From Lepidodermella squamata (Eukaryota; Animalia; Gastrotricha): DNA of 64,000 bases. Positions 16,897 through 51,650 of the stretch are shown in pieces. The stretch is taken from assembly GCA_047495785.1 (NCBI GenBank), contig JBLDXI010000003.1:2790001-2854000 (forward strand). Reading direction: 5' to 3'. Position numbers and translations under genes: made by a program. Under the pieces are notes generated by a model that searched no databases, was not told where the DNA came from, and worked only from the letters and a program-made list of their open reading frames with translations. Numbering within the stretch: the stretch's first letter is position 1; each line of letters opens with the position of its first letter.

Positions 16897-17057
16897 TTAC
16901 TGACTTATATAACAGTAAAGGTGTATAACAGCAAAGAGGAGATCGAGGAGATCGAGGAATGGAACGTTGCTGAATTTCTTCTTCATAGCCCGTCACCCAG
17001 CCCAAGTGGTTCCAGCTAAATTAACCGCCACGAGATGATAGATGGTGAAGAATGTCA
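16897..17057 (-). pseudogene. Relic 3' fragment (M3-M4) of a LamG-Cys-loop channel gene
   Basis: gaacgttgctgaatttcttcttcat...ccagctaaattaaccgccacgagatgatagat closely matches 17425-17506 of gene A. Contains indels. Confidence 0.85.
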
Positions 17058-17338
17058 AATTTGGTTCCGCAACACGCATATGAATTCCGCTAACGGTAAG
17101 ACACATCACATATAAGATTAGAAACGTGGGAATATTTAGTTTCATAAAAAAGACTATTTATCTGTGAAAAGCACTTGCGGTTTCTCTAGCTGTTTCGTCA
17201 GATAGTCAATGGGTTATATTCAGTAAATAAATAGTAAGATGACAATCTTTTTGCTAATACTACATCGCTCATCGGCGACAATCTACTCTATACTCTGATC
17301 CCCTTCTCTCACACTGATATGTTTACTGGGAAAGTTAT

Positions 17339-20239
17339 TCACTGATTTATGACTGTGTAGCAATAGATGTGTAAAGCAGCAAAAAGCGCGATCGAAGCCA
17401 GGAAAATGAGGAGATCGAGAAATCGAACGTTGCTGAATTTCTTCTTCATTGCGCGTCGCTCAGCCCAGGCCGTCCCAGCTAAATTAACCGCCACGAGATG
17501 ATAGATTGTGACGAAGGCCGTAAAAAAGCTCATGATTCGGATGTAGTCACCCAACAAAACCCCGTCCTGCGTTTTCGGAACTTGACCCATAACGTCAGAT
17601 TGAGCAACAGTCATTGCGAGTAGGGTCGTTACAGCGAAGTTCGGGCGATCAGGAGTATCAGGCGGCATAAGAAATGTGACCAGATCCAAAGCTGCCAACA
17701 GAGCACTAGGCAAGGCTAAATTGATAATGTAGTAATCCGGAATACGCTTGAGAATGACGGAATACTTCACAAAATGAACAGGCTGGCCTTTAAACTCTCG
17801 AGACCCATATACCACGTTTGAGGCGACCCAGCGCCATTCATTTGTCTCAAGAACCCGCCAAGCGAATAGCGGTTTATTATCATCGAAGCGTACGACCTTG
17901 GAGGAGCGGACTAGCTCAAACATGAAAGAGCACTCTTGCTCATCGTAAGGAAATCGACGTAAATCAAGACCACATATTGATTTGAAGCTCCCCTCACTGC
18001 TCCAGAAGAAGTCAAAAGTTTGATTCACTTCGCCAGGAGTAACAGTTACCGACAGATCACGGCCAAAGCTTTCGCCCGACATGAAAACGTTGTCCACAGC
18101 TGTGCTTGTGAAGCGTAGCTTAGGTACCCAGACGACATCGGGCGATGGTACGTACAAGGTTTCTTTCCGCTTTGTCAGAGCTGTTATGCTGTTCAATGGA
18201 CATGTCGTGACGTTCCAGGAAAGGACGAGCGTACCACTGACGTCAATTATTTGATCGACATTGTTGACCTCGTTTAGGCTCTCAACTTGAAAAGCAATCG
18301 TGATGATATTTGTTTGGTCGTTATTCGGTGGGACGGATCGATCTGCGGTGAAATCGTCACATTCTTTCATAGCGCTTTCAACCGGTTGGGGCTTGAATGA
18401 CTCCGGTGGCTGCGTTGGTATGACGCTAGACAGAATAGATGGAGCTTTCTTTTGCTCTTCCTTCGGTGGGGCTTCTTCGTATGGCTTCGGAGTGGTTGGA
18501 GCCGTAGAAGTAGCAGCTACTTTAATCGTTGATGTACCGACAGCTATGGGCGGGGTTGAAATGGCTGCCAAGACCTTCACAGTTGTTGACATTGACACAT
18601 CCTGAACGGGCAGCCCTGTTACGCTTGAAGTAGACAGCATTGGTGATGCTTGAGTAGTTGACTTCGCAGTTGGCGATGATGTTGAAGTATCAACTTTGGA
18701 ACTTGCAGACACTGAAATGGTTTTTGAAGCTGACGATGTCGGAGCGATGGTTGTAGTCGGGTTCGTTGTTGCAGCTGTTGATGTGGGGTTTAATGTTGTC
18801 GTAGTTGTTGGTACTGCATTGGTCGTTCGCGGAGTTTTCCAATTTTCGCAAGAATTTGGCAGCTGGACGATTTCGTCTTTAGTGAGACACGCACTGTAAT
18901 AAAAGAGGCACGCTATTGCATCACCTTCCTGCATTTTAGCATGTATACCAGCTACATTCCCAAAATATATCTCAGTGCTTTGAGAAAAATCCAGATCAGG
19001 CCATATTACAGACCCAAGTATCGACGGGGGCTTTCCATGGTAAACGGTCAAATTCGATGTAGTTTCGTCAAACGTGATTGCAATGAAGTGCCATACTCCG
19101 GGGTTGATATCATTGAAAGAGATGATATCAGTAGTTTGATAACTTACGGTCAGAGTTTTAGACGGCATTGGACCATATGACAAATAGAACAAATTCGCTG
19201 TTGCGCCATAATGGCTATAAATTCCCCGTCTTTCAGTTGAACTACCGGCATAAAAATACAGAGCAGTCGTAATCGATTTCGTACTTGAAAACGGTTTCGA
19301 AAGGGACTTGAAACTGCCGATCCTGTCTATCGTAGGATATCTTTTAAAAGATGAATTTGCGATGCCGAATGGACCGATTATGGTACTCTCTATTGCTCCA
19401 AGCAAAAATCCGGGATTACCGTTGCTGGTAATCTGAAGATTTTTCGCAACATCAGAAAGGTAGGAATAGTCATCCATTGGGAGGAAAAACTGGATGTCTG
19501 CGTCACGAGGCCAACTGCGACTCACTTCAATCGACGACTTCAGCTTCCAGTCACGGCAAGCCGTTGGCAGCTGTGCGATCTCTTCCTTGGCCATTTCATT
19601 CGTGTAACGCATAAAGCAGGCAATAGCATCGCTTTTGCCCAGCTGAGCTGAATCAGTCTTGCCCAAGGTCAGAGTTAGCTCTCCCCCTAGGTTCAAGCTT
19701 TGAGATATTTCCGTCGGAGTACCAATATTTTCGCCCAAATAGATCTTCAAATTATTGCCGTTGTACGTGATTGCAACAAAAATCCACTTGTTTGGTGCCA
19801 CAATTATTGAACCGATTTCAGTGCCGCTCTTCATTATTTTGACAGCTGAATTTGTTACCGAATAGCTCATGGCAAACATTTTTGGTTCAGCTGTACTGGA
19901 ATAGTCCAAAATGCCACGATTTGCCGTTTGATCGCTTCCAGATGCGTAGAAGTAAAACGATTGAGTGAATGCTGCATTGAAAGTCATGGTTACGGCGCAG
20001 ATACGCGAAGTGCCAACGCGATAGGATGTTTTCGGCGTGTTGAACGGTCCGTTGAACGCAGTCTGCACAGTTCCGACATCAGTTAGGGATATTAAGGCTC
20101 CACCAACCCCAGAAACATCGCTAAGACCTGCAGTTTCATCAAGCGGTAGAAAGAGCTCGATATCGCGTTGTTTAGGCCAAAATGCCGATGACGGATTGAA
20201 AGCGAGAATCAGCAGAACATAATGATGAAGGCAAATCAT
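17339..20239 (-). CDS. LamG-LamG-mucin stalk-Cys-loop ligand-gated ion channel, copy A (intact, intronless)
   Basis: Likely ATG at 20239 (MICLHHYVLLILAF signal peptide). Two repeats of LPxD..W.F.AIT..IACF..Y..EI.QL (LamG_3/pentraxin-like), a Thr-rich stalk, Cys-loop CGLDLRRFPYDEQEC (C-X13-C, FPxD) and four TM helices. Confidence 0.9.
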   Translation of the reverse strand: MICLHHYVLLILAFNPSSAFWPKQRDIELFLPLDETAGLSDVSGVGGALISLTDVGTVQTAFNGPFNTPKTSYRVGTSRICAVTMTFNAAFTQSFYFYASGSDQTANRGILDYSSTAEPKMFAMSYSVTNSAVKIMKSGTEIGSIIVAPNKWIFVAITYNGNNLKIYLGENIGTPTEISQSLNLGGELTLTLGKTDSAQLGKSDAIACFMRYTNEMAKEEIAQLPTACRDWKLKSSIEVSRSWPRDADIQFFLPMDDYSYLSDVAKNLQITSNGNPGFLLGAIESTIIGPFGIANSSFKRYPTIDRIGSFKSLSKPFSSTKSITTALYFYAGSSTERRGIYSHYGATANLFYLSYGPMPSKTLTVSYQTTDIISFNDINPGVWHFIAITFDETTSNLTVYHGKPPSILGSVIWPDLDFSQSTEIYFGNVAGIHAKMQEGDAIACLFYYSACLTKDEIVQLPNSCENWKTPRTTNAVPTTTTTLNPTSTAATTNPTTTIAPTSSASKTISVSASSKVDTSTSSPTAKSTTQASPMLSTSSVTGLPVQDVSMSTTVKVLAAISTPPIAVGTSTIKVAATSTAPTTPKPYEEAPPKEEQKKAPSILSSVIPTQPPESFKPQPVESAMKECDDFTADRSVPPNNDQTNIITIAFQVESLNEVNNVDQIIDVSGTLVLSWNVTTCPLNSITALTKRKETLYVPSPDVVWVPKLRFTSTAVDNVFMSGESFGRDLSVTVTPGEVNQTFDFFWSSEGSFKSICGLDLRRFPYDEQECSFMFELVRSSKVVRFDDNKPLFAWRVLETNEWRWVASNVVYGSREFKGQPVHFVKYSVILKRIPDYYIINLALPSALLAALDLVTFLMPPDTPDRPNFAVTTLLAMTVAQSDVMGQVPKTQDGVLLGDYIRIMSFFTAFVTIYHLVAVNLAGTAWAERRAMKKKFSNVRFLDLLIFLASIALFAALHIYCYTVINQ

Positions 20240-21561: not shown

Positions 21562-24229
21562 TCACTGATTTACGACTGTGTAGCAGTAGAAGTGTATGGC
21601 AGCGAAGAGCCCAATCGAAGCCAAGAAAACAATGAGATCGAGAAATCGAGCGTTGCTGAATTTCTTCTTCATGGCTCGCCGACCTGCCCAGGCCGTTCCA
21701 GCTAAATTAACCGCCACGAGATGATAGATTGTGACGAAGGCCGTGAAAAAGCTCATAATTCTGATGTAGTCGCCGAGCAACACCCCATCATGGGTTTTGG
21801 GAACTTGGCTCATAATATCAGATTGAGCCACAGTCATAGCTAGGAGAGTTGTTACAGCGAAATTCGGGCGATCTGGAGTATCAGGCGGCATGAGAAATGT
21901 CGCGAGATCCAAAGCCGCCAACAAAACACTCGGCAAGGCTAAATTAATGATGTAGTAATCCGGAATCCTTTTGAGAACAACGCTGTACTTCACAAAATGG
22001 GCGTATTGACCTTTAAAGTATCGAGTGCCGTATGTCACGTTTGAGCTGATCCAGCGCCACTCCTCCGTCTCAGTATCGCGCCAATTGAACAGCAGCTTGT
22101 TCTCATCAAAACGCACTACCTTAGAAGACCGGACATGCTCCATGACAAAGGAGCATTCTTGCTGATCGAAAGGAAATCGGCGCAAATCGAGACCACAAAC
22201 AGATTTGAAACTACCCTCGCTGCTCCAAAAAAAGTCAAGTGTCTTATTTACTTCACCCGGAGTTACAGTTACCGTCAGATCACGGCCAAAGCTATCGCCC
22301 CACATGTAGACATTGTCCACTGCCGTGGTCGTGAATCTGAGTTTAGGCACCCAGACAGTATCCGGAGATGGTACATAGAGGGATTCTCTCCGCTTCGTGA
22401 GAGCCGTTGTGCTATTTGCCGCACATGTCGTCACGTTCCATGCCATGACCAGAGTGCCACTGACATCTATAATTTGCTCGACGTTGTTGACCTCATTCAG
22501 GCTCTCGACTTGAAAAGCAATCGTGATGATATTGGTTTTTTCGTTATTCGGTGGGACGGATCGATCTGCGGTGAAATCATCACATTCCTTCATCGCGTTT
22601 TCAACGGGTTCTGGCTTGAACGACTCAGGAGGCAGCATAGGAACGACATTTGCCACCATATCTGCCATGGTAGCCGAGAGCATCGAGGTGGTCGGTGTTG
22701 AGGCTGGAGTTGCTGCCTTTGCAGGTGATGATGTGGAGACAGCATCCATTCGTGACGATACCGTAGCAGAAGCTGTTTGAGAAGTTGATGACATAGTGGT
22801 GGTGGTTGTCGTAGACATCGTTGATGTCGTAGTTGTTGGTACCGCAGTGGTTGTTCGTGGAGTTTTCCAGTCCTTGCAAGCATTTGACAGCTGCGCGATT
22901 TCATCTCTTGTTAGACAGGCTTTGTAATGAAAAAAACATGCCATTGCATCTCCAACCTACATGCCAGAATATATTCCCGGGACGATACCAAAATAAATGT
23001 GAGTGCTTTGAGAGAAATCCAGATCAGTTTTGGTTACAGTTCCAAGTGTTGATGGCGTTTTCCCAAGATATGCAGTCAAAACCGAGGTTGCCTCGTCGAA
23101 CGTAATAGCGATAAAATTCCACACTCCGGGGGTAATAATATCATGGTAAGTCATGATATCAGTATTCTGCCAACCTATGATCAGAGTGTTTGAGGGTGTA
23201 GGACCATATGACAAATAGAACAAATTCGACGCTGCGCCATAATGACTATAAATTCCCCGCCTTGCAGTTGAACTACCTGCATAAAAATACAGAGCAGTCG
23301 TAATTGATTTTGTACTTAAGGAAGGTAACGAAGTGGCCATGATTCCGCCAATTCTGTCAATCGCAGGATATGTTTTGATAGCAGAGTTTCCACCACCAAA
23401 TGGACCGACTATGGAACTCTCTATAACACCAAGCATATTTCCGGCAATACCCTTGCTGGAAACTAGAAGATTGTTTGCAACATCAGTCATGTAGGAATAG
23501 TCATCCATTGGGAGGAATCGATGACTTGAGTATCCAGTAACGACAAGCCTCTGGCAGCTGAGCGATCTCTTCCTTGGCCATATCATTCGCGTAACGCATG
23601 AAGCAGGCAATAGCATCGTATTGGCCCAGCTGACCTGAATCACTCTTGCCCAAAATAAGAGTCGATGCTTCACCTAGGCTCAGTGTTTGAGTTAATGTTA
23701 CCGTCGGATCGCCGACGTTTTCGCCAATAAAAATCTTCAAGTTATTGGTGATGTATGTGATAGCGAAAAATGTCCATTTGTTTTGCGTCACACTCACTGT
23801 CGCAACATGGTTGCCGCTCACCATTATCTTGATAGTTGAATCGGTTGAATAATACACCATCGCAAACAATCTCGAATCAGTAGGACTGGAATATTCGAAA
23901 ATTCCACGATATACCGTTTGATCGTTTCCAGAAGCGTAGAAGTAAAACGACTGAGTGAATCCTTGGCTGAACACCATAGAGACAGAGCAGATTTGCGACG
24001 TGCCGCTTTTGTATGAAGTTTTCGAAACGCTGAACGGCCCATTGACAGTGGTTTGAACAGATCCGCCGCCAGTTGAATTTATGGTAGCTTTGTTAGCCCC
24101 TGATACATCACTGCATCCTGCAGTTTCGTCCAGCGGTAGAAACAGTTCAATATCACGTTGCTTTGGCCAAAATGCAAGTGACACAATAAATAAGAAGCTC
24201 GTCAGAAAAAAGCATTGAAGGAGTAACAT
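21562..24229 (-). pseudogene. LamG-LamG-Cys-loop channel, copy B (44-bp frameshifting deletion near 23517; CAG>TAG stop at 22957-22959)
   Basis: Three ORFs tile a copy-A-like protein. Relative to A and C, 44 nt encoding the LamG1-LamG2 linker are missing. GGC ATG TAG GTT here corresponds to GGC ATG CAG GCT in C. The channel-encoding part 22944-21562 is open. Confidence 0.85.
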
Positions 24230-26406: not shown

Positions 26407-26494
26407 AACGATTGAAGTTGACGTAGTAAAAATTAACGCGTGCCAGACCTGACCATTATTTGAACCTAACCTTTATTATTTCCATTGACATTCG

Positions 26495-28574: not shown

Positions 28575-31248
28575 TCACTGATTTATGACTGTGTAGCAAT
28601 AGATGTGTATAGCAGCAAAGAACCCGATCGAAGCCAAGAAAATGAGTAGATCGAGGAATCGAACATTGCTGAATTTCTTCTTCATGGCTCGCCGACCCGC
28701 CCAGGCCGTTCCAGCTAAATTAATCGCCGCGAGATGATAGATTGTGACAAAGGCCGTGAAAAAGCTCATGATTTTGATGTAGTCACCGAGTAAAACCCCA
28801 TTACGGGTTTTTGGAACATGGCCCATGATATCAGATTGAGCCACAGTCATAGCTAGGAGAGTGGTTACGGCGAAGTTCGGGCGATCTGGAATATCAGGCG
28901 GCATAAGAAATGTCGCCAGATCTAAAGCCGCCAATAATACACTCGGCAAGGCTAAATTAATGACGTAGTAATCCGGAATCCTTTTGAGAACAACGCTGTA
29001 CTTCACAAAATGGGCGTATTGACCTTTAAAGTAGCGAGTGCCGTACGTCACGTTCGAGGCGACATAGCGCCATTCCTCTGTCTCCTGTTCCCGCCAAGCG
29101 AACAGCGACTTACTCTCATCGAAACGCACTACCTTAGTAGACCGGATATGCTCCATGATGAACGAGCACTCTTGCTGATCGAAAGGAAATCGTCGCAAAT
29201 CGAGACCACAAACAGATTTGAAGCTTCCCTCGATGCTCCAAAAAAAGTCGAGTGTCTTATTTACTTCACCCGGAGTTACAGTTACCGTCAGATCACGACC
29301 GTAGCTATCGCCCAACATGAAGACATTGTCCACTGCTGTGCTTGTAAAGCGTAGTTTGGGCACCCAGACAGTATCCGGTGACGGTACATACAGAGATTCC
29401 CTCCGCTTTGTGATAGATGTTATGCTATTTGCCGCGCATGTCGTCACGTTCCACGCCATGACCAAAGTGCCACTGACGTCGATAATTTGCTCAACGTTGT
29501 TGACCTCGTTGAGGCTCTCGACTTGAAAAGCAATCGTTATGATATTGGTTTTTTCGTTATTCGGTGGAACGGATCGATCTGCTGTGAAATCATCACATTC
29601 TTTCATTGCGTTTTCAACGGGTTCCGGCTTGAACGACTCGGGAGGCAGCATAGGAACGACATTCGCAACCATATCGAGTCGAGGGCTCCGAGGTGGCCAA
29701 TGTTGCAGCTGGAGTTGCTTTTTGCGTTACAACATTTGCGGTTGACGATGTGGATATAGCTGAAATGGTATTAGAAGTTGATGACATCGTAGTGGTGGTT
29801 GTCGTAGGTGTCGTTGTTGTCGTAGTTGTAGGTACTGCAGTGGTCGTTATCGGAGTTTTCCAAGTGTTGCAAGCATTTGACAGGTTTGCGATTTCAGCTC
29901 TTGTGAGACAGGCGCTGTAATGAAAAAAGCATGCCATTGCATCTCCAGCCTGCATGCCAGAATATACTCCCGGGACGATTCCGAAATAAATGTGAGTGCT
30001 TTGAGAAATATCCAGATCAGTTCTGGTTTCAGCCGTCAACAGCGAATTCCCAAGGTAAGCAGTCAAACCTGAAGTTGCCCCGTCGAAGGTAATAGCAATG
30101 AAATGCCATTGTCCGGGGTTGATAACATTGAAATAGTTGGTATCGCTATTTCGCAAACCTATGGCCAGACCGTATGAGGGACGATAGGACAAATAGAACA
30201 AATTCAATCCTGCGCCATAAAAACTATAAATTCCTCGATTTGCAGCTGGATCTGCTGCATAAAAATACAGAGCAGTCGTAAATGATTTGTTAGTTGAGAA
30301 TGTTTTCGAAGTGGCCAGGATTCCGCCGATTCCGTCAATCCCAGGATATGTTTTCATAGAAGAGTTTGCTGCACCAAAAGGACCGTTTATAGAATTTTGT
30401 AAAGCTCCAAGCAAAGATCCGGAATTACCATCGCTGGAAACCTGAAGATTTTTTGCAACATCAGTCATGTAGGAATAGTCATCCATTGGGAGGAAAAACT
30501 GGATATCTGCGTCACGAGGCCAACTGCGACTCGCTTCAACCGATGACTTCAGCTTCCAGTCTCTGCAAGCCGACGGTAGCTGAGCGATCTCTTCCTTGGC
30601 CATTTTATTCGCGTAACGCATAAAGCATGCAATGGAATCGTTTTGGCCCAGCAGAGCCGTATCACTCTTGCCCAAAGTAAGAGTTAGTCCTCCACCTAGG
30701 GTCATTGTATAAGAAAATGAATTTATCAGATCGATGTTTTCGCCAAGATATATCCTCCAACTACTGGCGATGTACGTGATAGCGACAAATGTCCACTTGT
30801 TTGGCGTCACAGTGACCGTTGTAACATGGGTACCGCTCACCATTATCCTGATACCTGAATCGGTTGAAATGTACCTCAACGCAAACAATGTCGGATCAGC
30901 AGGACTGGAATAAAGGAAAATTCCACGATCTACGGTTTGATCGTTTGCAGAAGCGTAGAAGTAAAACGACTGAGTGAATCCTTGGCTGAACGCCATAGAG
31001 ACAGAGCAGATTTTCGACGTACCGATTTTGTACGATGTATTCGGGACGTTGAACGGCCCATTGACAGTGGTTTGAACAGATCCGCCACCAGTTGTATTTA
31101 GGGTAGCATTATTGACCCCTGATACATCACTGCATCCTGCAGTTTCGTCCAGCGGTAGAAACAGTTCAATATCGCGTTGCTTTGGCCAAAATGCAAGTGA
31201 CACAATAAATAAGAAGCCCATCAGAAAAAAGCATTGAAGGAGTAACAT
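28575..31248 (-). pseudogene. LamG-LamG-Cys-loop channel, copy C (frameshift at the stalk/channel junction, ~29676)
   Basis: ATG at 31248. ORF1 encodes SP-LamG-LamG-stalk and then runs out of frame. ORF 29672-28575 encodes the whole channel. Alignment to B shows a net 8-nt deletion (tgccatggt > g). Confidence 0.85.
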
Positions 31249-31933: not shown

Positions 31934-32256
31934 ATTAACCACGAATAACCAAAGTAGGATAAGCATGCGTATAGCGATGAAGATTGACAGCAGGGAAACT
32001 ACAAAAACCAGCTCGTCAAGAAACCGGACATTGTTGATTTTCTTTTTTAATACTCGTCGCTCGGCCCATTGAGTACCAGCTAGCAGGCAGGATAGAGGGT
32101 TATAAACGCTGCCTGGAAACCGTTAACTCTAATGTAGTCACCCAGAAGAATCCCATCGTTAGCATTAAAACCTTCGCTTTCATTAAATTCATTGATTAAA
32201 CTATTCAATTTTAGTTTGTTATTCGGGCTATTTCGCAAAAGCAATAAGAGTCACTG
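31934..32256 (-). pseudogene. Collapsed relic: D-like channel 3' end fused to B-like 5' flank
   Basis: 31934-32158 matches the M3-M4 end of copy D (32617-32844). 32159-32256 matches the upstream region of copy B (24326-24422). Confidence 0.8.
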
Positions 32257-32616: not shown

Positions 32617-35349
32617 TTATCCGCGAATAATTATCAGACAATAAGCATGTATAGCGATGAACATGGACAGGGAAGCTGCAAAAACCAGCACGTCAAGAAA
32701 CCGGACATTGCTGATTTTCTTTTTTAAAGCTCGTCGCTCAGCCCATTGAGTACCAGCTAGCAGGCAGGCAAACAGATGATAGAGGGTTATAAACGCTGCC
32801 AGGAGACCGGTAACTTTAATGTAGTCACCCAGGAGAATCCCATCGTCACTTTTCGGCAGTTGGTTCAATACATCCGATTGGGCCACAGTAAGCGCTAGAA
32901 GAGTAGTTATCGCGAAATTCGGGCGATCTGGCGCATCAGGTGGCAGCAAGAAAGTAGCCAGATCCAAGACAGCTAACAAAGCACTCGGCAAAGCCAGATT
33001 CATAATGTAGTAGTCGGCAATTCTATCCAAAACCACGGCATATTTGACATACTGAACTTCCTGACCCTTGAAAATTCGTGAATCGAATGTCACATTCGAA
33101 GCGACCCATCTCCATTCTGGCGTGTTGTAGTCTTGCCAAGCGAATAGCGACAGACTTTCATCAAATCGTACAACATTAGTCGATCGAACGAGTTCAAAGA
33201 TGAAGGAACATGTCTGCTGGTCGAATGGAAACCTACTCAGCTGAAGGAAGCAGACGGACTTGAAAATTCCTTCATTTGTCCAGTAGAAGTCGAAAGTTTG
33301 GTTGACTTTACCAGGCGTGGTCACAGCTGCCAGATCTTTTCCGAAGTCATCAGAGTTTTCCATGAATTTATTTCCTGCCGCGCCGCTTATGAACCGAATC
33401 TTAGGAATCCAGACCTTGTCAAGAGATGGGACGTAGATAGACTCAGCGTATCTCGTCATTTCAGTTGTGCTATCCATCGGGCATGTCGTAACTTTCCAAT
33501 TCAAAACCATAATACCGTCCACTTCGATGGTTTGCTGAACGTTGTCGATGGTATTAAGGCTAAATACCTCAAAGCCTATCTTCACACGGGTAGGTTCACC
33601 GTTGTTCGGAGGAACGGATCTCTCTGCCGTGAAGTCGTCGCATTCCTTCATTATGGTCTCAATAGGTGTTGGGTTTGTCGACTCTTTCGGCAGCATTGGG
33701 ATGATTTGCTGCATCACTATTGAGGAACGGATTTCGCGAGAGTTTGAAGGAATTGGTATCGCTTGGGGACTGATTGTAGTTCTATCTTGTTTTGCCGTTA
33801 TCTGTGTTGTTTTTGTTGTCGAAGTTGGCGGAATACTACTTGTAGTTGATGAAGCTTGAAATGTTGTAGTTGTTGTGGATAGCTTTGAAGATGCGGTAGA
33901 TGTTGCAGTTGTCGTTGTTGTCGACGGAGATGCTGTAGATGTTGTCGTTGTTGAAGTTGTAGCCGGAAGCAACCGCCAGTTCTTGCAAGTATCCGGGAGT
34001 TGCTTTATCTCCGCCTGCGATAGCGCGGTGTCAAATTGGAAAATGCAGGCCATTCTCAAAGTATCGTTGAATGGTTCAGGCCAAGCTTGAGCGTCATTAG
34101 ACTCGCCAAATGATGCGATGGTTCCATTTGTGAAGTCAAGTGAAGGCACGTTATAGCTTCCAATAAGGTGTGCCGATTCTCCGTGATAGAAGCTCAAGTT
34201 TTTCGACGTGGAGTCAAACGACAGCGCGAAGAAATGCCAAGTGTCCATTGAAACAGACATACCTTGTCCAATAAGCCCGTTTCGCAACGTATATAGCTTT
34301 GTCGTGGCTGACTCGGACACTAGCTCGAGAACATCGATGGAACTCAAGTAGCACTTTATAATGCCACGCCTGCTAAAAGTTGATTCGATTCCAAAGCGAA
34401 CATAAAGCGCTATCGTCGTTGAGGCGGAGTAGGCGACTTTTCCAGCAGCTACGAAGGCTCTAACAGGGCGCATAGATGTTCCAGGCACACTGAATGGCCC
34501 TGTCAAATCTGTGGAAATCGAGCCAGGAGCACCCCATACATCGAAGGGGATGCCGCGATAAACTTCGTTGCCATAGGAATATTCATCCAGGGGCAAGAAG
34601 TAGTACATCTTATCTGGCCTGACCCAGTTATTCGATGACTGCACTGAGGATTTTTCTTTCCAACCGCGACAAGCCCCGGGTAACTGATTCAGCTCAACCT
34701 TCTTCAGCCATGTCGAGTATAGCATGAAACATGCCATCGCATCATTTTTTGCCAATTTGGAATCAAGACTTCGCCCAATTTGCAGAATGTTGCTTGAGGC
34801 AAGATTGAAAACCTGCTCAAACGAGCTTTCTTTCTGTTGATTCTCACCAACATAGATTTTGGCGAGATTCCCTCCGTATGTGAATGAGACGAAATTCCAT
34901 TGCCCAGGTACTACTGCATTCGTCATGTTGAAAAACGAACCGCCTGTCATACCAATCTGAAGGGTTCCATCGGATTGAAGGTAATTCATAGACAATGTGC
35001 TTGTATCCGTACCGCTCGAGAACGTGAATAATCCACGTTTTGCCGTTGAGTCAGTGTTATCCGGGTAGAAATAGAACGACAGTGTCAATTCAGCTCCAAA
35101 GGAAGATTGCACGCTACATATTTGTTCTGTTGCGATTTTGAAGGCTGTTTTTGGCGACCCGAAAGGCCCGTTTCGCAAGGCTAGCACCCCGTTTTCACCG
35201 CTACAAATGGCTTGATTATTAACGACATCCGTCAAGTTCGAAACTTCATCCATTGGCATGAGGAATTTGAGATCTTTTTGACGCGGCCAATAGCCCAGCG
35301 ATCCATCGAATATTATAGCGAGAATAATCACACTGAAAACTGAATGCAT
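32617..35349 (-). CDS. LamG-LamG-mucin stalk-Cys-loop channel, copy D (intact, 910 aa)
   Basis: Signal peptide, two LamG-like repeats, Thr stalk, Cys-loop CFLQLSRFPFDQQTC, M2 PDRPNFAITTLLALTV, four TM helices. Confidence 0.9.
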   Translation of the reverse strand: MHSVFSVIILAIIFDGSLGYWPRQKDLKFLMPMDEVSNLTDVVNNQAICSGENGVLALRNGPFGSPKTAFKIATEQICSVQSSFGAELTLSFYFYPDNTDSTAKRGLFTFSSGTDTSTLSMNYLQSDGTLQIGMTGGSFFNMTNAVVPGQWNFVSFTYGGNLAKIYVGENQQKESSFEQVFNLASSNILQIGRSLDSKLAKNDAMACFMLYSTWLKKVELNQLPGACRGWKEKSSVQSSNNWVRPDKMYYFLPLDEYSYGNEVYRGIPFDVWGAPGSISTDLTGPFSVPGTSMRPVRAFVAAGKVAYSASTTIALYVRFGIESTFSRRGIIKCYLSSIDVLELVSESATTKLYTLRNGLIGQGMSVSMDTWHFFALSFDSTSKNLSFYHGESAHLIGSYNVPSLDFTNGTIASFGESNDAQAWPEPFNDTLRMACIFQFDTALSQAEIKQLPDTCKNWRLLPATTSTTTTSTASPSTTTTTATSTASSKLSTTTTTFQASSTTSSIPPTSTTKTTQITAKQDRTTISPQAIPIPSNSREIRSSIVMQQIIPMLPKESTNPTPIETIMKECDDFTAERSVPPNNGEPTRVKIGFEVFSLNTIDNVQQTIEVDGIMVLNWKVTTCPMDSTTEMTRYAESIYVPSLDKVWIPKIRFISGAAGNKFMENSDDFGKDLAAVTTPGKVNQTFDFYWTNEGIFKSVCFLQLSRFPFDQQTCSFIFELVRSTNVVRFDESLSLFAWQDYNTPEWRWVASNVTFDSRIFKGQEVQYVKYAVVLDRIADYYIMNLALPSALLAVLDLATFLLPPDAPDRPNFAITTLLALTVAQSDVLNQLPKSDDGILLGDYIKVTGLLAAFITLYHLFACLLAGTQWAERRALKKKISNVRFLDVLVFAASLSMFIAIHAYCLIIIRG

Positions 35350-35972: not shown

Positions 35973-37973
35973 CTATTTATTAATAGTTGACAAAATATAA
36001 GCATGAATCGCGATGAAGATTCCAGTGGTTACAGAGAACGCCAGTACATCGATGAGTCGAATAAGGCGAATTTTGCAAGGTCGCACCGATCGGTTAGCTA
36101 TTTTCACGCTAGACAGCAGACAAGCGATTAGATGATAAACAGTGACAACAGCTGAGAAAAAAGATATCGCCCTGACGTAATCCCCAAGTAAAATTCGATA
36201 CTGCACCTTTGGCAATTGGTTCAAAACATCTGATTGCGCTACAGTTAACGCAAGTAGGATCGTAACCGCAAAAGCGGGCCTATCTGGGGCATCAACAGGT
36301 AAGGCGAAGGTAGCAAGATCCAGAAAAGCTAGCATTGCACTTGGCAATAACAGGTTAATGACGTAGTAGTCAGGGATACGCCGTATCTTAACGATAAAAT
36401 TGACAATATGCACCCGTTGCCCTTTGAATTTTCGCCATTCCAGGGATGTTTTCGAAGAAATCCACTTCCATTCGCTGGTTTCGAGATCCAGCCAATTGAA
36501 ATCGATGGAATTTTCATCAAATAGCAAAACCGACATTGGGCGGACCATTTCGAAGGTGAAAGTGCACTGTTGCTCATCGAAAGGGAACAAGCTCAGATCA
36601 AGGTCGCATTTCGACTTGAAGCTGCCTTCATTCGTGTAGAAGAATTCGAAAGTTTGGTTTGGGAAATCTTGAGAATTCAGCACTGTCACATCTCTTCCGT
36701 AATCATCGCCAACTAAAAATACGTTGTTAACCGCCGTACTCGTGAACCGAATTTTTGGCAACCAAACGGTCTCAGGAGAAGCGACATAGAGCTTTTGCGG
36801 GGTCTTGGTCAGGGCTGTTATGCTAGTTCTTGGGCACGTGGTGACCTTCCAAGTCATTAGCATTAGCCCATCAACGTCGATCAGCTGATCCACATTGCTA
36901 ACCTCGTTCAAACTACCGACTTCGAACGCAATTCTTATGACATTTGGCTCAAAGTTGTTTGGAGGAACCGCTCGTTCCGGGGTGAAATCTTTGCATTCTT
37001 GCATGGCTATTTCAATCGGCAAAATGTCCTCGGCCTCCTCAGGCATGTCCGGGACAATGGTTGAAGCTATTGATATCGGCTTCGAGGGGAGTGTTACCAT
37101 GGTTTTCTTTGTTGTCGTAGCACTTGGGGTTCCGATTGATGTAGCTAAATCAGGACTTGTTTTTGCTGTTAAGGTCGTCGTTGTGGTAGTCGTTGATCTA
37201 GCCGTTGTTGTAGATAAAAATGTAGATGTTGATGTTGAACTCGAAGAAGTTGAGGATGACACAGTCGAGGTTGATGGAGGCGGGTTTTGACTTCTACAAG
37301 CTGTTTGAACATCAATCAAATCCGACTGTGTCAGCGCAGTGTTATGGAGCATCAAACACGCCATGGCATCCTCGCGCAGCATTTTGTTGCTTTCGGTGTA
37401 GCGACCGAAGTAGAGTCTAGCGATTGAAGCTACTTCGATTACTTTATCCGGGTAATTGTAAGCTTTTAGAGTATCTCGACCGGTGTAGAGCGTTGCGGTA
37501 TTTTGCGAGTACGTAACAGCTATGAAATTCCATTGCCCTGCCACAACGCAGTCCGTGATAGTGGCGACTTGCGGCATGGAAATTGAGTTTGGATTGGCGT
37601 AAATCATTGCGAATTTGTCATTGATTCCAGTCGAGTCCATGAAGCTGAAAATTCCCCGATTGCTCGATGAGGCTGCCAGGAATACGAAAAACGAGATGGT
37701 GAACTCGGCGATGGGAGACAACACGACATATCCAATCAGGTTAATACCGATTTTGTAAGACGTTGATGAGACCCCGTATGGCCCAGGTATGCCTTGCTGG
37801 AGAGAACCCAAGTCATTATTCACGCCGGCGTTCACGACACATTTGTTGGTAAGATCTTTCAACGCTGATTTCGCATCAAGAGGGAAGAAGAATTGCAAGT
37901 TACTCTGCCTCGGGTATTGTGCATTTGCGCCGGCTATCGCCGTTAAAGCAAAGACTAAAGAAGTCAGAAGCAT
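35973..37973 (-). CDS. Single-LamG-mucin stalk-Cys-loop channel, copy E (intact, 666 aa)
   Basis: Signal peptide MLLTSLVFALTAIAGANA, one LamG-like domain, Ser/Thr stalk, Cys-loop CDLDLSLFPFDEQQC, four TM helices. Confidence 0.9.
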   Translation of the reverse strand: MLLTSLVFALTAIAGANAQYPRQSNLQFFFPLDAKSALKDLTNKCVVNAGVNNDLGSLQQGIPGPYGVSSTSYKIGINLIGYVVLSPIAEFTISFFVFLAASSSNRGIFSFMDSTGINDKFAMIYANPNSISMPQVATITDCVVAGQWNFIAVTYSQNTATLYTGRDTLKAYNYPDKVIEVASIARLYFGRYTESNKMLREDAMACLMLHNTALTQSDLIDVQTACRSQNPPPSTSTVSSSTSSSSTSTSTFLSTTTARSTTTTTTTLTAKTSPDLATSIGTPSATTTKKTMVTLPSKPISIASTIVPDMPEEAEDILPIEIAMQECKDFTPERAVPPNNFEPNVIRIAFEVGSLNEVSNVDQLIDVDGLMLMTWKVTTCPRTSITALTKTPQKLYVASPETVWLPKIRFTSTAVNNVFLVGDDYGRDVTVLNSQDFPNQTFEFFYTNEGSFKSKCDLDLSLFPFDEQQCTFTFEMVRPMSVLLFDENSIDFNWLDLETSEWKWISSKTSLEWRKFKGQRVHIVNFIVKIRRIPDYYVINLLLPSAMLAFLDLATFALPVDAPDRPAFAVTILLALTVAQSDVLNQLPKVQYRILLGDYVRAISFFSAVVTVYHLIACLLSSVKIANRSVRPCKIRLIRLIDVLAFSVTTGIFIAIHAYILSTINK

Positions 37974-39005: not shown

Positions 39006-41918
39006 TCAAACTTTGACAATTGTCATGCAGTAGGCATGGATACAAATGTAGAAGCCAAGGGAAGCGAACAACATCAACATGTCCATCAACCGAACGAGGG
39101 TGATTTTGCATTTTCCAAATGAACGTTGTGCCACTTTTCTACTAGCCACGAAGCATGCGAACAAATGATACGCTGTAATAAAAGCCGCATAAAATGTTGT
39201 TGCTTTTATGTAGTCGCCTAAGAGTATTCGGCTCTTCGTTTTCGGTAGTTGGGCCAGGACATCAGATTGGGCGACGGTGAGAGCTAACATTGTTGTTATA
39301 GCAAAACCCGAACGATCCGGCAAGTCTGGCGATAAGAAGAATGTTGCCAAATCCAAAAATGCCAGCAAAGCACTCGGCAAAGCCAAGTTCATTAGGTAGT
39401 AATCAGGGATTCTCCGTAAGACGACTTCAAACTCTACGACATGAATCGGCTGGCCAACAAACATTCGGGTATCTAGAGTCACATCAGACGAAACCCATAG
39501 CCACTCTGTTGTCGTGCGGTCAAGCCAATTGATTAAAAAAGTATTGGTATCGAATTGCAGAACCTTCATAGGTCTTGTTAGTTCGAAAGTGAAATAACAA
39601 CGCTGCTCATCGAATGGAAAATAGCATAAATCGAGTTTACACACTGATCGGAAATTTCCTTCGGTGACTAAAAAGAAGTCGAAAATTTGGCTGTCGCCAA
39701 GCGGCGTATTGAGAACGGTGAGGTCTCTTCCGAACGAGCCATCATTCATGTATGGATTACTAGTGGCGCCGCTGGTAAAGCGCAACTTCGGAGCCCAAAC
39801 ATTATCCGGCGAGGCCACATACAAAGTTTCAGGCCTCTAAGTGAGTTCAGTGGTGCTATTCAGAGGGCAGGTCGTCACGCTCCATTTCAGAAGTAGCAAG
39901 CCATTAACATCGATCGCCTCGTTTACGTTGTCAATGCCGTTCATTCGGTTAACTTCGAACGCAACTGTGACGTGAGTTGCTTTCCCGTTATTGGGCGGGA
40001 CAGATCGATCCGCAGTGAAATCATCGCATTCTTCCATGATTCTCTCTATCGGAGTGGGATTTGTCGAAGGTTCCGGTAGAACAGGTACAAAACTTGAGAC
40101 TAGACTTCTTGGAACAGACGGAGGCGGCGTTGCTGTTGTCGTAAGTTTTACTGTCGGGGTTACGGTACGTTCAGCAGAACTAATCTTGGTCGTTATGGTA
40201 GGAGGAATTTTAGTTGAAGAGCCAGGTGATGTAGTAGAAGTTTCCGGCGGCGTTGAAGTCGAGATCGTTGCTTTTACCGTTGGTGGGACAGTAGGTCCAG
40301 CAGTAGAACTGATTCTGGTTGATGTTGTTGAAGGAATTGCAGTTGAAGACCCTGCTGATGTTGAAGAAGATGTCGTCGAAGCTGAAGACCCTGCTGCGGT
40401 TGAAGAAGATCTTTGCGCCGTTGTAGATTTTGTGGTTGAAGATGAGGTCGTTGTTGTGGTCGAAGTGCTAGTTGTTGGAAATGTCTTCCAGTTCTTGCAA
40501 GACCCTGGCAGTTGCTTGATCTGCTGCGGAGACAAGACGGCGCCGTATTGAAAAAAGCATGCCATACTATCGAAGGCAAAACCCGATAAACCTATCTTGC
40601 CGTCATCGCCTTGCATTAACGCAACAAAATCACTTGTGTCGATCGCAGGCTGTGTTATTAGCTGTGTTGAATTTACCGAACGAGCAGCTTCCCCTGTATA
40701 CAAGCTCAGAGTCGAGGTAACTGCATCGTAAGAGACGGAAAAGAAGAGCCACTTAGTTAACTCGATGTTAGACACTGACAATAATGTACCACCATCTGTA
40801 TTGGCGATTATTAGCGAGCTGGGATGCTGAAAATATATGGATAGGCGCGAGTGCGTGGCTTTGCTCCAAAAGTTGAAGATTCCTCGTGTAGGCTCATCTG
40901 CCCTATCGGCTAAGTTAACGTAGGAAGCGACTGTAAGACTTGACGTAAATTTAGTGGGAATGACGTTGCACAGGCGATCCTTGATAACTCGCGCTGATGA
41001 ATTCGCCTTATCGAAGGTGCCCAATTTCGATGTGTCAATTACCCCTATACTATCCAGTCTTCCCACTTCTCTGACGACCATTGCATTGCTACCAGATACA
41101 TCATTCAGGTACGAGAAATCATCCATAGGTATGAAGACTTGTAGACTATCGGGCTTCGGCCAGTTATGCGAGGCCTGAACCGAGGTTTTTGCCTCCCAGT
41201 TCTTGCATACGGCAGATAGCTGTTGCAGCTCCTCAGCTTGAAGCATTTCATTGTAATGCATGACGCAGGCCATTCCATCAGAATCTAGCATGAATGTCGT
41301 ATCAGCAGATCTACCCACGTCAACTAAAGTCGTCTGTGACAACTTGATCTCCGTGCTAGATGTTATCGGTTGGACTAGTGTTGGATTTTCCCCAGTGTAC
41401 ACCTTCAATGTCGTCCCGAGCAAAGTTATCATAACAAAATTCCATTGCCCTGCAGTAATAGCATTGGCAACCTCCCCTATAGCCTGGGTTCCGACTCGGA
41501 ATTCGAGGGAGCTCGGGTGCTTGTAAACTACAGAGAATAAATTGCCCGCGTCACTCTTGTAGGCGAATAATCCTCGATTTACACCCGCCTGGGCGTCTGG
41601 GTAGAAGCAGAATGCAAGCGTCATGTCGCTATTGAGCGTAACTTTGACACTGCCGATCAAGCCATTTTTCGGGCGATATGATGTTTTAGGTTGGTTGAAT
41701 GGCCCCGTGAATGCCGTTTGCAACTCCCCGTAGACATTATTCCGAACCCCACCCCCAACAACAGTCTTGCTCCTGGCAACGTCTCTAACGCCGGCTGCTT
41801 CATCAAGTGGCAGTAGGAACTCAATATCAGCTTGCCTTGGTAGAAAGCCGTGGCTTAATCCAAGAAAAGCTGAGATAAACTGTATGATAGTCCTCATCAG
41901 AATTCGTCGAGAATTCAT
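39006..41918 (-). pseudogene. LamG-LamG-Cys-loop channel, copy F (single in-frame TAG at 39837-39839)
   Basis: ORFs 41918-39837 and 39824-39006 share a frame. ACT TAG AGG CCT here corresponds to ACT AAA AGG CCT (T-K-R-P) in copy G. Otherwise full length. Confidence 0.8.
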
Positions 41919-45890: not shown

Positions 45891-46255
45891 GTTCGATATT
45901 CATGTGAAACATATTAAAAACCCAAATGAGCCAGTTAGACGCGGGAGACCTCGTAAGTCGACCCTGTTAATGCGACGCACGGAAATTCACAAAATTGCGG
46001 ATCTAGAATTAGCGGAAATAACTGCCAGAGATCGGGATGAATGGCAATTAGTGTGCAATAGCATCGAAAATTATGAATTTTTGGGCAAAAACAGGTTGTT
46101 CGCGACCGATCTGTCGGCCCCTGAAGCCGATCGCCTGTCGTCAGCCGTCCCCTAAACCCTCACGGGTAAGGCCTTTTTTTCTACTCTCTAATATTACATC
46201 ACATGCCTACGGAGGACGAAAAATAAAACTGATTCATTCATTCATTCATTCATTC
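45891..46255 (+). mobile_element. 5'-truncated RTE-like LINE insertion with (ATTC)n tail and TSD
   Basis: Encodes RRGRPRKS..ARDRDEW (typical RTE-clade ORF C-terminus), followed by AATAAA and an (ATTC)n tail. TSD ATTCTGATAGTCT at 45878-45890 and 46256-46268. Confidence 0.85.
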
Positions 46256-46449
46256 ATTCTGATAGTCTAATTTTTGTTTTTGAATTAAAAAAATCAAAGG
46301 AATCGAATCGCGCGATGAGCCTTTTATCTTTGGAATCCTTGAAAGACGGAGATTCTTCCCATGAAAATTACGAAAATTTTGGAGATATATGCTCTTTTTC
46401 CACCTTCTAAATCAATAAATTCAAATTTGTGTGCAAATTCATAGTTTAA

Positions 46450-48700: not shown

Positions 48701-48968
48701 CTGCCCTGAACTATCGAACCCAAGATACTGATCGAACCTGAAAAACTATCGAACCCTGAGGTTTTTCCTTCCTTGCTTACCGTTGGAGGTACCCCGCCCC
48801 CTCCCCACGCTCCCTTTTTTCCCGCCTAACTGAAACGTTCAGTTTTTATTTAGTCAACTCAGATTTGAAGTTATCTCTAGACAACATTAAAAAAGCAGTA
48901 TACGATAATGAAAGCAGAAATAGATGATGAATATTGATTTGAAAAGTCAGTCTATTCTTGACTTCAGT

Positions 48969-51650
48969 TCAAAATTTGACAATTGACATGCAGTAAGCAT
49001 GTATACCAATGTAGAAGCCAAGGGATACAAAAAACATCAAAATGTCTATCAACCGCACGAGGGTGATTTTGCGCTTTCCAAACGAGCGTTGCGATGTACT
49101 GGCCACGAAACATGCGAACAAATGATACGCTGTAATAAAAGCCGCGTAAAAAGTCGTCGCTTTAATATAGTCGCCCAAGAGTATACGGCTTTTAGTTTTC
49201 GGTAGTTGGGCCAGGACATCAGATTGGGCGACGGTGAGAGCTAGCATTGTAGTTATAGCAAAACCCGGACGATCTGGTACGTCCGGTGGCAAGAAGAAAG
49301 TAGCCAAATCCAAAAAAGATAGCAAAGCACTGGGCAAAGCCAAGTTGATTAGGTAGTAGTCAGGGATTCTTCGCAAAACAACCCCGAACTCTACGATGTG
49401 TATCGGCTGGCCGACAAACATTCGGGTATCGAGGGTCACATTAGATGAAACCCATTCCCATTCCGTTGTCAGGCGGTCAAGCCAATTGATGAGAAAAGTG
49501 TTGGTATCGAATTGGAGAACTTTCATTGGCCTTGTGAGTTCGAAAGTGAAATAGCAACGCTGCTCATCAAAAGGAAAATAGCATAAATTAAGGTCACAAA
49601 CAGATCGGAAATTTCCTTCGGTGACTAAGAAGAAGTCGAAAATTTGGCTCTCGCCCAGCGGCGTATTGAGAACGGTAAGGTCTCTTCCGAATGAATCATC
49701 AGCCATATAAGGATTACTAGCGGCACCGCTGGTGAAGCGCAACTTCGGAGCCCAGACCGTTTCCGGCGATGCCACATACAACGTCTCAGGCCTTTTAGTG
49801 AGTTCTGTGGTGCTATTCAAAGGGCAGGTCGTCACGTTCCATTTCAGAAGAATCAAGCCATAAACATCAATCACCTGGTTTACGTTATCAATTCCATTCA
49901 TTCGGCTAACTTCGAACGCGACGGTAATGTGAGTTGCTCTCCCATTATTGGGCGGGACAGATCGGTCCGCAGAGAAATCATCACATTCTTTCATGGCGCT
50001 CTCTATCGGGGTCGGATCTGTCGAAGGTTCGGGCAGAACAGGTACAAAACTTGAGACCAGGCTTCTTGGAACAGACGGAGGCGGCGTTGCTGTTGTCGTA
50101 AGTTTTACTGTCGGGGTTACGGTACGTTCAGCAGAACTAATCTTGTTCGTTATTGTAATAGGAATCGCAGTTGAAGATGTTGTCGAAGTTTCCGGCGACG
50201 TTGAAGTCGAGATCGTAATAGTCGAAGTGCTAGTTGCCGGGAATGTCCAATATTCGCAAGTTCCCGGAAGTTGCTTTATCTCATCTGTAGACAGCACAGC
50301 GCCGTATTGGAAAAAGCATGCCATTGCATCAAATTCGAAACCCGTATAAGCGATCGTGCCGTCGTTGCCTTGAAATAGGGCAATAATAGCGCTTGTGTCG
50401 ACCGCAAGCTGCGTTGTTAGCTTTGTTGAAGCCACCAAATCAGCATTTTCCCCTGTATATAGTCTCAGAATCAACGTATCTGGATCGTACGAAACGGCGA
50501 AGAAGACCCACTTCGTCACTGAAATATTAGAAATTGACGCTAATGCCCCATTTTTATTAGCAATTATCAACGAGGCGGGGTGCTGAAAATGCGCAGATAA
50601 TCTTGAACCTATCGCGGCGTCCCAATATACGAAGATACCACGCGCAGGCTGATCAGGCATATTAGCAAGATTTACATAAAGAGCGACAGTAATGCTTGCC
50701 GTGAATTTCGGAACAACGTTGCACAGGCGATCCTTGATAACTCGCGCCGATGAATTCGCCTTATCGAAGGGGCCCAATTTCGATGTGTCAATTACCCCTA
50801 TACTATCCAGTTTTCCCACATCTCTGACGACCATTGCATTGCTACCAGATACATCATTCAGGTACGAGGAATCATCCATAGGTATGAAGACTTGTAGACT
50901 ATCGGGCTTTGGCCAGCTTTGCGAGGCCTGAACCGAGGTTTTTGCCTCCCAGTTCTTGCATACCGCGGATAGCTGTTGCAGCTCCTCAGCTTGAAGCATT
51001 TCATTGTAATGCATGACGCAGGCCATTCCATCAGAATCTAGCATGAATGTCGTATCAGCAGATCTGCCCACGTCAACTAAAGTCGTCTGTGACAACTTGA
51101 TCTCCGTGCTAGATGTTAACGGTTGGACTAGTGTTGGATTTTCCCCAGTGTACACCTTCAATGTCGTCCCGAGCAAAGTTATCATAACAAAATTCCATTG
51201 CCCTGCAGTAATAGCATTGGCAACCTCCCCTATAGCCTGGGTTCCGACTCGGAATTCGAGGGAGCCCGGGTGCTTGTAAACTACAGAGAATAAATTGCCC
51301 GCGTCACTCTTGTAGGCGAATAATCCTCGATTTACACCCGCCTGGGCGTCTGGGTAGAAGCAGAATGCAAGCGTCATGTCGCTATTGAGTGTAGCTTTGA
51401 CACTGCCGATCAAGCCATTTTTCGGGCGATAGGATGTTTTAGGTTGGCTGAATGGCCCAGCGAATGCCGTTTGAACTTCCCCGTAGACATTTTTCGCATC
51501 CCCACCCCCAAGTACAATCTTGCCCCTCGCAACGTCTCTAACACCGGCTACTTCATCAAGTGGCAGTAGGAACTCTATATCAGCTTGCCTTGGTAAAAAG
51601 CAAAAACTTGATCCAAGAAATGCTGAGAGGCACGTTAGGAAAACTCTCAT
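48969..51650 (-). CDS. LamG-LamG-mucin stalk-Cys-loop channel, copy G (intact, 893 aa)
   Basis: Signal peptide, two LamG-like repeats, stalk, Cys-loop CDLNLCYFPFDEQRC, M2 PDRPGFAITTMLALTV, four TM helices. Closest paralog is F. Confidence 0.9.
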   Translation of the reverse strand: MRVFLTCLSAFLGSSFCFLPRQADIEFLLPLDEVAGVRDVARGKIVLGGGDAKNVYGEVQTAFAGPFSQPKTSYRPKNGLIGSVKATLNSDMTLAFCFYPDAQAGVNRGLFAYKSDAGNLFSVVYKHPGSLEFRVGTQAIGEVANAITAGQWNFVMITLLGTTLKVYTGENPTLVQPLTSSTEIKLSQTTLVDVGRSADTTFMLDSDGMACVMHYNEMLQAEELQQLSAVCKNWEAKTSVQASQSWPKPDSLQVFIPMDDSSYLNDVSGSNAMVVRDVGKLDSIGVIDTSKLGPFDKANSSARVIKDRLCNVVPKFTASITVALYVNLANMPDQPARGIFVYWDAAIGSRLSAHFQHPASLIIANKNGALASISNISVTKWVFFAVSYDPDTLILRLYTGENADLVASTKLTTQLAVDTSAIIALFQGNDGTIAYTGFEFDAMACFFQYGAVLSTDEIKQLPGTCEYWTFPATSTSTITISTSTSPETSTTSSTAIPITITNKISSAERTVTPTVKLTTTATPPPSVPRSLVSSFVPVLPEPSTDPTPIESAMKECDDFSADRSVPPNNGRATHITVAFEVSRMNGIDNVNQVIDVYGLILLKWNVTTCPLNSTTELTKRPETLYVASPETVWAPKLRFTSGAASNPYMADDSFGRDLTVLNTPLGESQIFDFFLVTEGNFRSVCDLNLCYFPFDEQRCYFTFELTRPMKVLQFDTNTFLINWLDRLTTEWEWVSSNVTLDTRMFVGQPIHIVEFGVVLRRIPDYYLINLALPSALLSFLDLATFFLPPDVPDRPGFAITTMLALTVAQSDVLAQLPKTKSRILLGDYIKATTFYAAFITAYHLFACFVASTSQRSFGKRKITLVRLIDILMFFVSLGFYIGIHAYCMSIVKF

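Follow-up and report, generated by a model that had tools for sequence, protein, structure and literature searches.

DeCLIC is a bacterial pentameric ligand-gated ion channel (pLGIC) in which each subunit carries two extra beta-rich jelly-roll lobes before the ligand-binding domain and has a near-zero intracellular loop; ionotropic glutamate receptors (iGluRs), too, have accessory N-terminal domains, to which ligands or partners bind (PMC9897478). The reviews and structural papers on pLGICs hold such accessory domains to be a prokaryotic peculiarity, and the main text of a pan-kingdom pLGIC inventory nowhere uses the words "N-terminal," "fusion," or "lectin" (PMC4795631). Here we describe a tandem array of genes from the gastrotrich Lepidodermella squamata that join one or two LamG-type jelly-roll domains, which we call heads, through a Ser/Thr/Pro-rich stalk to a compact Cys-loop channel. 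The array lies in a 64,000-nucleotide stretch of contig JBLDXI010000003.1 (assembly GCA_047495785.1, positions 2,790,001 to 2,854,000, forward strand); we call this whole stretch the window and use its own coordinates throughout. With its true Cys-loop, the family is a clear eukaryotic counter-example to the prevailing view.

Like DeCLIC, the window proteins have extra jelly-roll lobes N-terminal to the extracellular domain (ECD) and almost no intracellular loop. The differences are equally plain: DeCLIC has a Pro-loop without cysteines, whereas the window proteins have a C-x13-C Cys-loop; the N-terminal domain of DeCLIC packs straight on the ECD, whereas in the window proteins a mucin-like, low-confidence linker of 66-138 residues intervenes; and the window proteins have eukaryotic signal peptides and heads of the LamG_3/pentraxin type. 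The 50 best structural matches of the heads did not include DeCLIC.

Results

Heads and channel in one reading frame

Seven related loci (A-G) lie in tandem on the minus strand between 16.9 and 51.7 kb, in the place where an earlier note on this DNA had put seven same-strand genes. That note took all seven as complete; we find only A, D, E, and G intact, each as a single uninterrupted, intron-free open reading frame (ORF), while B, C, and F are disrupted by frameshifts or stops. Pfam places Laminin_G_3, Neur_chan_LBD, and Neur_chan_memb in one ORF in every intact copy (E-values in gene A of 1e-14, 7e-12, and 6e-7, respectively). Laminin_G_3 (PF13385) scored 55.4 bits in A, 49.4 in D, and 46.4 in G, and 23.0 in E, which is under the Pfam gathering cut-off of 27.6 bits; A and G have two such stretches each. 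Neur_chan_LBD (PF02931) scored 39.7-59.2 bits against a cut-off of 26, and Neur_chan_memb (PF02932) 26.9-30.4 bits against 28.1, which A and G pass and D and E just miss. Together with the C-x13-C loop and the four helices described below, these matches bear out, for the intact copies, the note's claim of a complete Cys-loop pLGIC fused in one ORF. The head count falls within the one to two that the note gave, with one in E and two in A, D, and G (from Pfam and the model of D), and the Thr/Ser stalk is as the note described it: between the last head and the channel lie 66-138 residues, of which 53-68% are Ser, Thr, or Pro, the length differing two-fold among paralogs. In the translations, each intact copy has a short hydrophobic segment resembling a signal peptide at its N-terminus.

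Judged from the reading frames and from distant relatives, the fusion of heads and channel is real. No separate signal peptide precedes the channel half; the stretch just before it consists of the stalk and a conserved "P-x-LP-x-E-S...P-I-E...M-K-E-C-D-D-F" sequence. Since a pLGIC subunit requires a signal peptide, the channel has to be synthesised as the continuation of the heads. In an exhaustive profile search against 1.84 billion representatives there were 5,935 hits, and the top matches are unnamed proteins on independent ENA metagenome contigs that have the same layout in one ORF, with two heads in P0001 and P0002, one in P0005, and three in P0011. With P0001, D shares only 37% identity in its channel and 25% in its head; the full layout being kept at 37% channel identity, the architecture has been maintained over a long divergence. 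Because the channel half lacks a signal peptide and the distant relatives keep a single ORF, a gene-model artefact in which two genes are read through is excluded. Prokaryotic origin or contamination is excluded as well, by neighbouring genes with short introns and Sushi repeats and by the nearest named relatives, which are animal receptors. Word-index protein searches were uninformative: the whole of D gave no match, probably because the Thr-rich stalk absorbed the words, and the channel alone gave just P0014.

Read evidence came from a DNA run (X1) and from a shallow 2015 run flagged "RNA?" (X2), whose status as RNA is uncertain. Short X2 contigs cover the head, stalk, and channel of E and parts of D, with 0 splice joints; a 620-nt spacer has no X2 contigs. 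The DNA run covers the region and contains single-nucleotide polymorphisms. Some of its contigs are 90-95% alike and may represent a second haplotype or close paralogs. One variant contig at the 3' end of gene D (32617-32846) is rearranged or duplicated ("goes back 230, 457 letters between") and lacks 10 nt at 32768, and another carries 6 extra nt (GTTGTC), in frame, in the D stalk at 33940.

Fold and relatives of the heads

The AlphaFold model of the D head pair, built from a 28-sequence alignment (pLDDT 83.7, pTM 0.70), consists of two beta-sandwiches. In domain-wise VIA comparisons, each head matched carbohydrate-binding or lectin-like jelly rolls with Z scores of 17-20 and a root-mean-square deviation of 2.6-3.0 Å over 186-204 residues. 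These matches include domain 4 of AbnA, which binds arabinan, the lectin-like domain of trypanosome (trans-)sialidase, and the HCN domain of NTNH/BoNT; head 1 of D reaches Z 18-20 with the carbohydrate-binding domain 4 of AbnA and with NTNH/BoNT HCN, and head 2 reaches the same values with AbnA and the trans-sialidase lectin domain. Foldseek, with a probability of 1.0, ranked tandem LG/LNS pairs (laminin alpha2 LG4-5, Gas6, neurexin L2-L3) and clostridial Hc at the top for the head pair (E 1e-13 to 1e-9), and the neighbours of the heads in AFDB and Atlas are "LamG-like jellyroll" proteins. As modelled, then, the heads adopt the LamG/ConA jelly-roll fold, on which the earlier note had made its reading depend; Pfam, AlphaFold, Foldseek, and the Z scores of 17-20 agree on it.

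The note had also called the heads pentraxin-like, which is correct for the family profile and not for single sequences. The head-family profile matches pentraxins in the PDB (NPTX1 3e-9, PTX3 6e-9, NPTX2 2e-8, Limulus SAP 1e-7, CRP 4e-5), those to NPTX1, PTX3, and SAP spanning profile positions 293-451, i.e., the part that corresponds to D head 2, but Pfam Pentaxin (PF00354) gave no match at E<=1 for any single window protein, so true pentraxin membership is unsupported. The pentraxin signature HxCxS/TWxS is absent, and the matching strand reads W-x-F-x-A/S-x-T/S-Y/F, without His or Cys. The accurate label for the heads is LamG_3, distantly related to pentraxins. Their conserved features are WP[RK]x...F-L-P-L-D-E, GPF, RGIF, W-x-F-x-A-x-T-Y, and Y-x-G-E, and a Cys pair is conserved in DAMAC...QLP-x-x-C.

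The heads also occur away from channels. P0024, an ENA metagenome protein, has the same two-head cassette at its N-terminus, colinear with that of the window proteins (E 2e-16), followed by a C-terminal trypsin domain, so that the effector is a protease and not a channel. Heads are found alone in proteins of about 280-360 aa, or in arrays of four (P0052) and eight (P0042). This occurrence on trypsin, free, and in arrays suggests that the cassette is a portable recognition module. On the contig that encodes the fused channel P0001 (L001), six tandem trypsin-domain ORFs adjoin at 3677-9437.

The channel module

The channel part comprises only about 340 residues, and its best sequence matches in the PDB are nAChR and 5-HT3 (E 2e-14). 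Every intact copy has a C-x13-C loop with FP[FY]D, as do relatives; in gene A it reads CGLDLRRFPYDEQEC. Our full-length D model, based on a 4-sequence alignment, is poor (pLDDT 50) and was used only for the positions of the helices and for the H3FXQ6 lead described below. It has four C-terminal helices, at residues 778-801, 809-829, 840-866, and 875-909, which would place about 8 residues between M3 and M4. The M2 sequence, P(-2') D(-1') R(0') ... L(9') ... T V A Q S D, aligns to nAChR; besides an nAChR-like "LLxLTV" core it has a proline at -2' and an acidic residue at -1'. From the -1' Asp, the 9' Leu, and the nAChR-like M2, the pore is probably cation-permeable.

The window channels thus resemble nAChR and 5-HT3 in the FPFD motif of the Cys-loop and in an M2 with 9' Leu, "LLxLTV," and acidic -1'. 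They differ in lacking the Trp of loop B and the Cys pair of loop C, in the short M3-M4 loop (70-270 residues in nAChR and 5-HT3), and in adding the proline at -2' and a further conserved Cys pair (ECDDF ... VTTCP), which suggests an extra disulfide.

Constraint, conversion, and broken copies

In close pairs, dN/dS is 0.10-0.14 for the channels (at dS 0.37-0.85) and 0.30-0.63 for the heads; among the deep paralogs, the channels are 53-62% identical and the heads 29-40%. Pore-lining and Cys-loop residues are invariant across these paralogs. By these substitution estimates, the channels are under strong constraint and the heads evolve about three times faster. F and G differ little in head 1 (dS 0.085) and far more in head 2 (dS 0.615) and the channel (dS 0.565), a pattern that marks a gene-conversion tract confined to the first head (40464-41849 versus 50226-51602).

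The three broken copies carry the following lesions. Gene B has a frameshifting deletion at the junction of its two heads (about 23515/23516) and a stop at 22957-22959 in place of a Gln of C; gene C has an 8-nt gap relative to B within the stalk (about 29676/29677), which shifts the frame of the channel half; and gene F has a TAG at 39837-39839 where G has AAA (Lys). The in-frame TAG of F at the Lys codon of G, the 8-nt gap of C, and the deletion and Gln-to-stop change of B exclude introns as the cause of these breaks. Even with the broken copies, channel dN/dS is low (0.14 for B-C and 0.10 for F-G), and the lesions would therefore be either recent or assembly errors. Duplication, conversion, pseudogenes, and rapidly evolving ectodomains, taken together, typify receptor families confronted with variable ligands.

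Relatives of the channel

A quick maximum-likelihood analysis of 93 channel domains, with SH-aLRT supports, places the window copies in a single clade (99) that is sister to P0001/P0002 (86). This clade is nested in a 20-row clade (95) with all the head-bearing or otherwise N-terminally extended relatives. Directly outside it stand hundreds of head-less short pLGICs of about 370-400 aa from the same metagenome projects, which are also intron-free and in tandem arrays. Three ENA metagenome contigs of related organisms (L007, L009, and L010) carry intron-free tandem arrays of 3-4 head-less pLGIC genes encoding 372-425 aa, which points to a very large lineage-specific pLGIC expansion. Within the same clade, P0007 (743 aa), P0009 (797 aa), and P0010 (760 aa) have other N-terminal extensions of 300-440 residues, with an EGF-like module in P0007 and a weak LamG_3 match in P0010, so that swapping of N-terminal domains seems common in the clade.

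Comparable proteins in other animals

Our full-text searches of the literature turned up no account of a Cys-loop receptor fused to LamG, pentraxin, lectin, or LDLa domains. The earlier note's statement that no LamG-fused animal Cys-loop family has been described therefore stands for the literature; it has to be tempered for protein collections, where arthropod clusters of the ESM Atlas and H3FXQ6 are comparable. The clusters nearest to gene D by language-model features (0.79-0.81) are arthropod proteins of 761-905 aa with Neur_chan_LBD, Ldl_recept_a, and Pentaxin; these clusters have 679, 88, and 55 members, and there are others, some of them with Lectin_C; such arthropod proteins number about 800. 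The D channel by itself is nearest (0.97) to an arthropod cluster of short pLGICs of 368 aa. The model of this cluster aligns with the Pentaxin-LDLa and Lectin_C-LDLa clusters at TM scores of 0.77-0.80 over 342-349 of 368 residues, which indicates that the arthropod lectin-LDLa proteins contain a whole channel. To this extent the architecture, which the note had allowed might prove common in annotated animal proteomes, is partly so, in the form of clusters combining Pentaxin or Lectin_C with LDLa and Neur_chan_LBD.

According to cluster annotation and models, the arthropod proteins resemble the window proteins in placing a ConA-fold or lectin domain ahead of a pLGIC that is both short and complete. 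They have LDLa and Pfam Pentaxin or C-type lectin domains, whereas the window proteins have LamG_3 heads in pairs, a mucin-like stalk, and no LDLa: Pfam gave no Ldl_recept_a match in the window proteins, and the LDLa cysteine/SDE motif is present in 0 of 170 relatives. H3FXQ6, an unnamed AFDB protein of 849 aa, aligns over D residues 79-908, covering head and channel, as a lead from the poor full-length model. With the clusters and H3FXQ6 as leads, the L. squamata genome is probably not alone in encoding eukaryotic pLGICs with a ConA-fold or lectin domain, and the arthropod clusters suggest that the window family is not the sole eukaryotic counter-example. The genes reported here represent a family of eukaryotic pLGICs, not described before, whose N-terminal domains have lectin folds; its uniqueness is tempered by these apparently analogous, equally unstudied arthropod proteins.

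Discussion

Based on our findings, we propose that the array encodes a birth-and-death family of pentameric, probably cationic channels in which tethered heads capture glycan or protein targets and the channel gates, a reading to which we give an even chance of being right. Each subunit would be made as one secreted-pathway polypeptide consisting of a signal peptide, 1-2 heads, the stalk, and a compact Cys-loop channel. The Ser/Thr/Pro stalk is probably O-glycosylated and extended. We infer that five subunits would form a pore that carries 5-10 heads well above the ligand-binding domain. The heads could serve as variable recognition modules for glycan or protein targets, and their binding would bring a ligand or surface to the channel, or the channel to a ligand or surface. 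Such a scheme would work by tethering, local capture or concentration, or localisation rather than by rigid allostery, with gating left to the conserved channel module. Since the stalk is 66-138 residues long and predicted to be disordered, rigid allosteric coupling of the kind seen in DeCLIC or the iGluR N-terminal domains is unlikely.

Several observations weigh against this proposal. Three of the seven copies are broken, and the Neur_chan_memb scores hover at the Pfam cut-off. No sugar- or calcium-binding residues were identified in the heads, the pentraxin-type calcium site not having been examined. In the alignments, the position of the loop B Trp, 7 residues after the Cys-loop, is occupied by Val, Met, Ile, or Thr, and the vicinal Cys pair (CC) of loop C in nAChR is absent. 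A long disordered stalk alone cannot relay a conformational change. The fast evolution of the heads could be explained by relaxed constraint instead of diversifying selection, as all dN/dS values are <1. Finally, no read or contig bridging head to channel was seen in X2, a shallow run, in the D-E region.

The heads may alternatively be anchoring or clustering modules that attach to extracellular matrix, cuticle, or a partner cell, the channel itself being gated by a small-molecule transmitter or pH. Secreted neuronal pentraxins cluster AMPA receptors through the N-terminal domains of these receptors, and there too a pentraxin-type domain is found at the outer face of a ligand-gated channel; that pentraxin is a separate secreted protein and its receptor a tetrameric iGluR, whereas here the domain is a covalent part of a Cys-loop subunit. 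The head-family profile matches neuronal pentraxin-1 and -2 and PTX3, the closest structural counterparts of the tandem domains are LG pairs from the matrix or the synapse (laminin, neurexin, Gas6), and a long flexible stalk fits a tether. In agreement with anchoring, the channel ECD is well conserved among paralogs, as would be expected with one common small ligand. However, the heads diverge fast (29-40% identity), with conversion and gene loss, and are also found on proteases and as free secreted proteins, a pattern that fits recognition of variable targets better than attachment to a conserved structural partner; anchoring is thus a possible but doubtful explanation. We consider it unlikely that the window proteins are lectin-gated channels, i.e., ionotropic pattern-recognition receptors in which binding of a glycan, a microbial surface, or a secreted glycoprotein by the heads opens or licenses the pore. 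If they were, they would provide a millisecond electrical read-out of a macromolecular cue, and the same principle would have a second branch, so far unrecognised, in the arthropod pentraxin/C-type-lectin-LDLa-pLGIC proteins.

The combination of an adhesive head, an extended stalk, and a channel also resembles tether models, in its anatomy only, and the heads could grip an external structure so that a pull on the glycosylated stalk opens the channel. Yet the stalk joins the ECD at its N-terminal helix, an element not known to act as a gating lever, the stalk length varies two-fold among paralogs, and to our knowledge no pLGIC is force-gated; we therefore judge this very improbable. Three broken copies of seven, two relics, and weak evidence of expression would suit a decaying or non-functional cluster, whose remaining ORFs are recent duplicates that have not yet been disrupted, or whose products are non-conducting scaffolds. 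This is the least probable of the explanations considered, as it sits badly with channel dN/dS of 0.10-0.14 at dS 0.37-0.85, with the invariant pore-lining and Cys-loop residues of paralogs whose channels are 53-62% identical, and with homologues at 37% identity that retain the full layout.

On our proposal of tethered heads that capture targets for a gating channel, lectin-type recognition would be joined to fast ionotropic signalling if the heads confer ligand specificity, a link undescribed for the superfamily. The window family is also a natural system in which to ask what an accessory domain does to a pLGIC; being intron-free and having almost no intracellular domain, its genes should suit expression and cryo-EM.

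Features of the window

The coordinates of the array are collected in the table. The relic downstream of gene A accounts for the start, 16897, that the earlier note gave for the array.

Table. Genes, relics, and parts of gene D in the head-channel array (window coordinates)
Feature	Position	Strand	Description
Relic of channel 3' end, downstream of gene A	16906-17136	minus	tblastn
Gene A	17339-20239	minus	Intact, 966 aa from first ATG; signal peptide, two LamG_3 heads, 138-aa Ser/Thr/Pro stalk, Cys-loop channel
Gene B	21562-24229	minus	Broken, frameshift and in-frame stop (tblastn, read-through alignment, DNA alignment to A)
Gene C	28575-31248	minus	Broken, channel half out of frame
Relic of channel 3' end (M3-M4 region)	31952-32166	minus	Two frames; tblastn
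Gene D	32617-35349	minus	Intact, 910 aa; reference copy for models
D channel, aa 554-910	32620-33690	minus	ECD, Cys-loop at 33208-33252, M1-M4
D stalk, aa 464-553	33691-33960	minus	60% Ser/Thr/Pro; predicted disordered, pLDDT 25-35
D head 2, aa 239-463	33961-34635	minus	Second jelly roll (model)
D head 1, aa 19-235	34645-35295	minus	Predicted LamG_3 jelly roll; Pfam 7e-13; pLDDT mostly 85-97
Gene E	35973-37973	minus	Intact, 666 aa; single head, stalk, channel
Gene F	39006-41918	minus	Broken by in-frame TAG; head 1 almost the same as that of G
Gene G	48969-51650	minus	Intact, 893 aa; two heads, stalk, channel

Rfam gave no match in the window. At lower coordinates than the array, an Ariadne-type RBR E3 ubiquitin ligase gene lies at 1972-3498 on the minus strand (IBR 2e-12, UBA_ARI1), its exons split by very short gaps. 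It is followed on the same strand by two tandem paralogous multi-exon genes with short introns, at 3897-6297 and 8790-11018, which have the motifs "DDVxLRFGIHVGxCH" and "YWVDWREPV" in common; the two ORFs of the second paralog that were scanned gave no Pfam match at E<=0.01. A 360-aa Gln/Pro-rich ORF on the plus strand (14625-15707), without a Pfam match, lies where the left half of the window is richest in GC. On the other side of the array, a very large Sushi/CCP-repeat gene occupies 52715-63785 on the minus strand; one of its exons encodes 1249 aa with 17 Sushi repeats (Pfam E 3.5e-132), and further Sushi-rich exons are separated by gaps of about 40-100 nt that resemble short introns.

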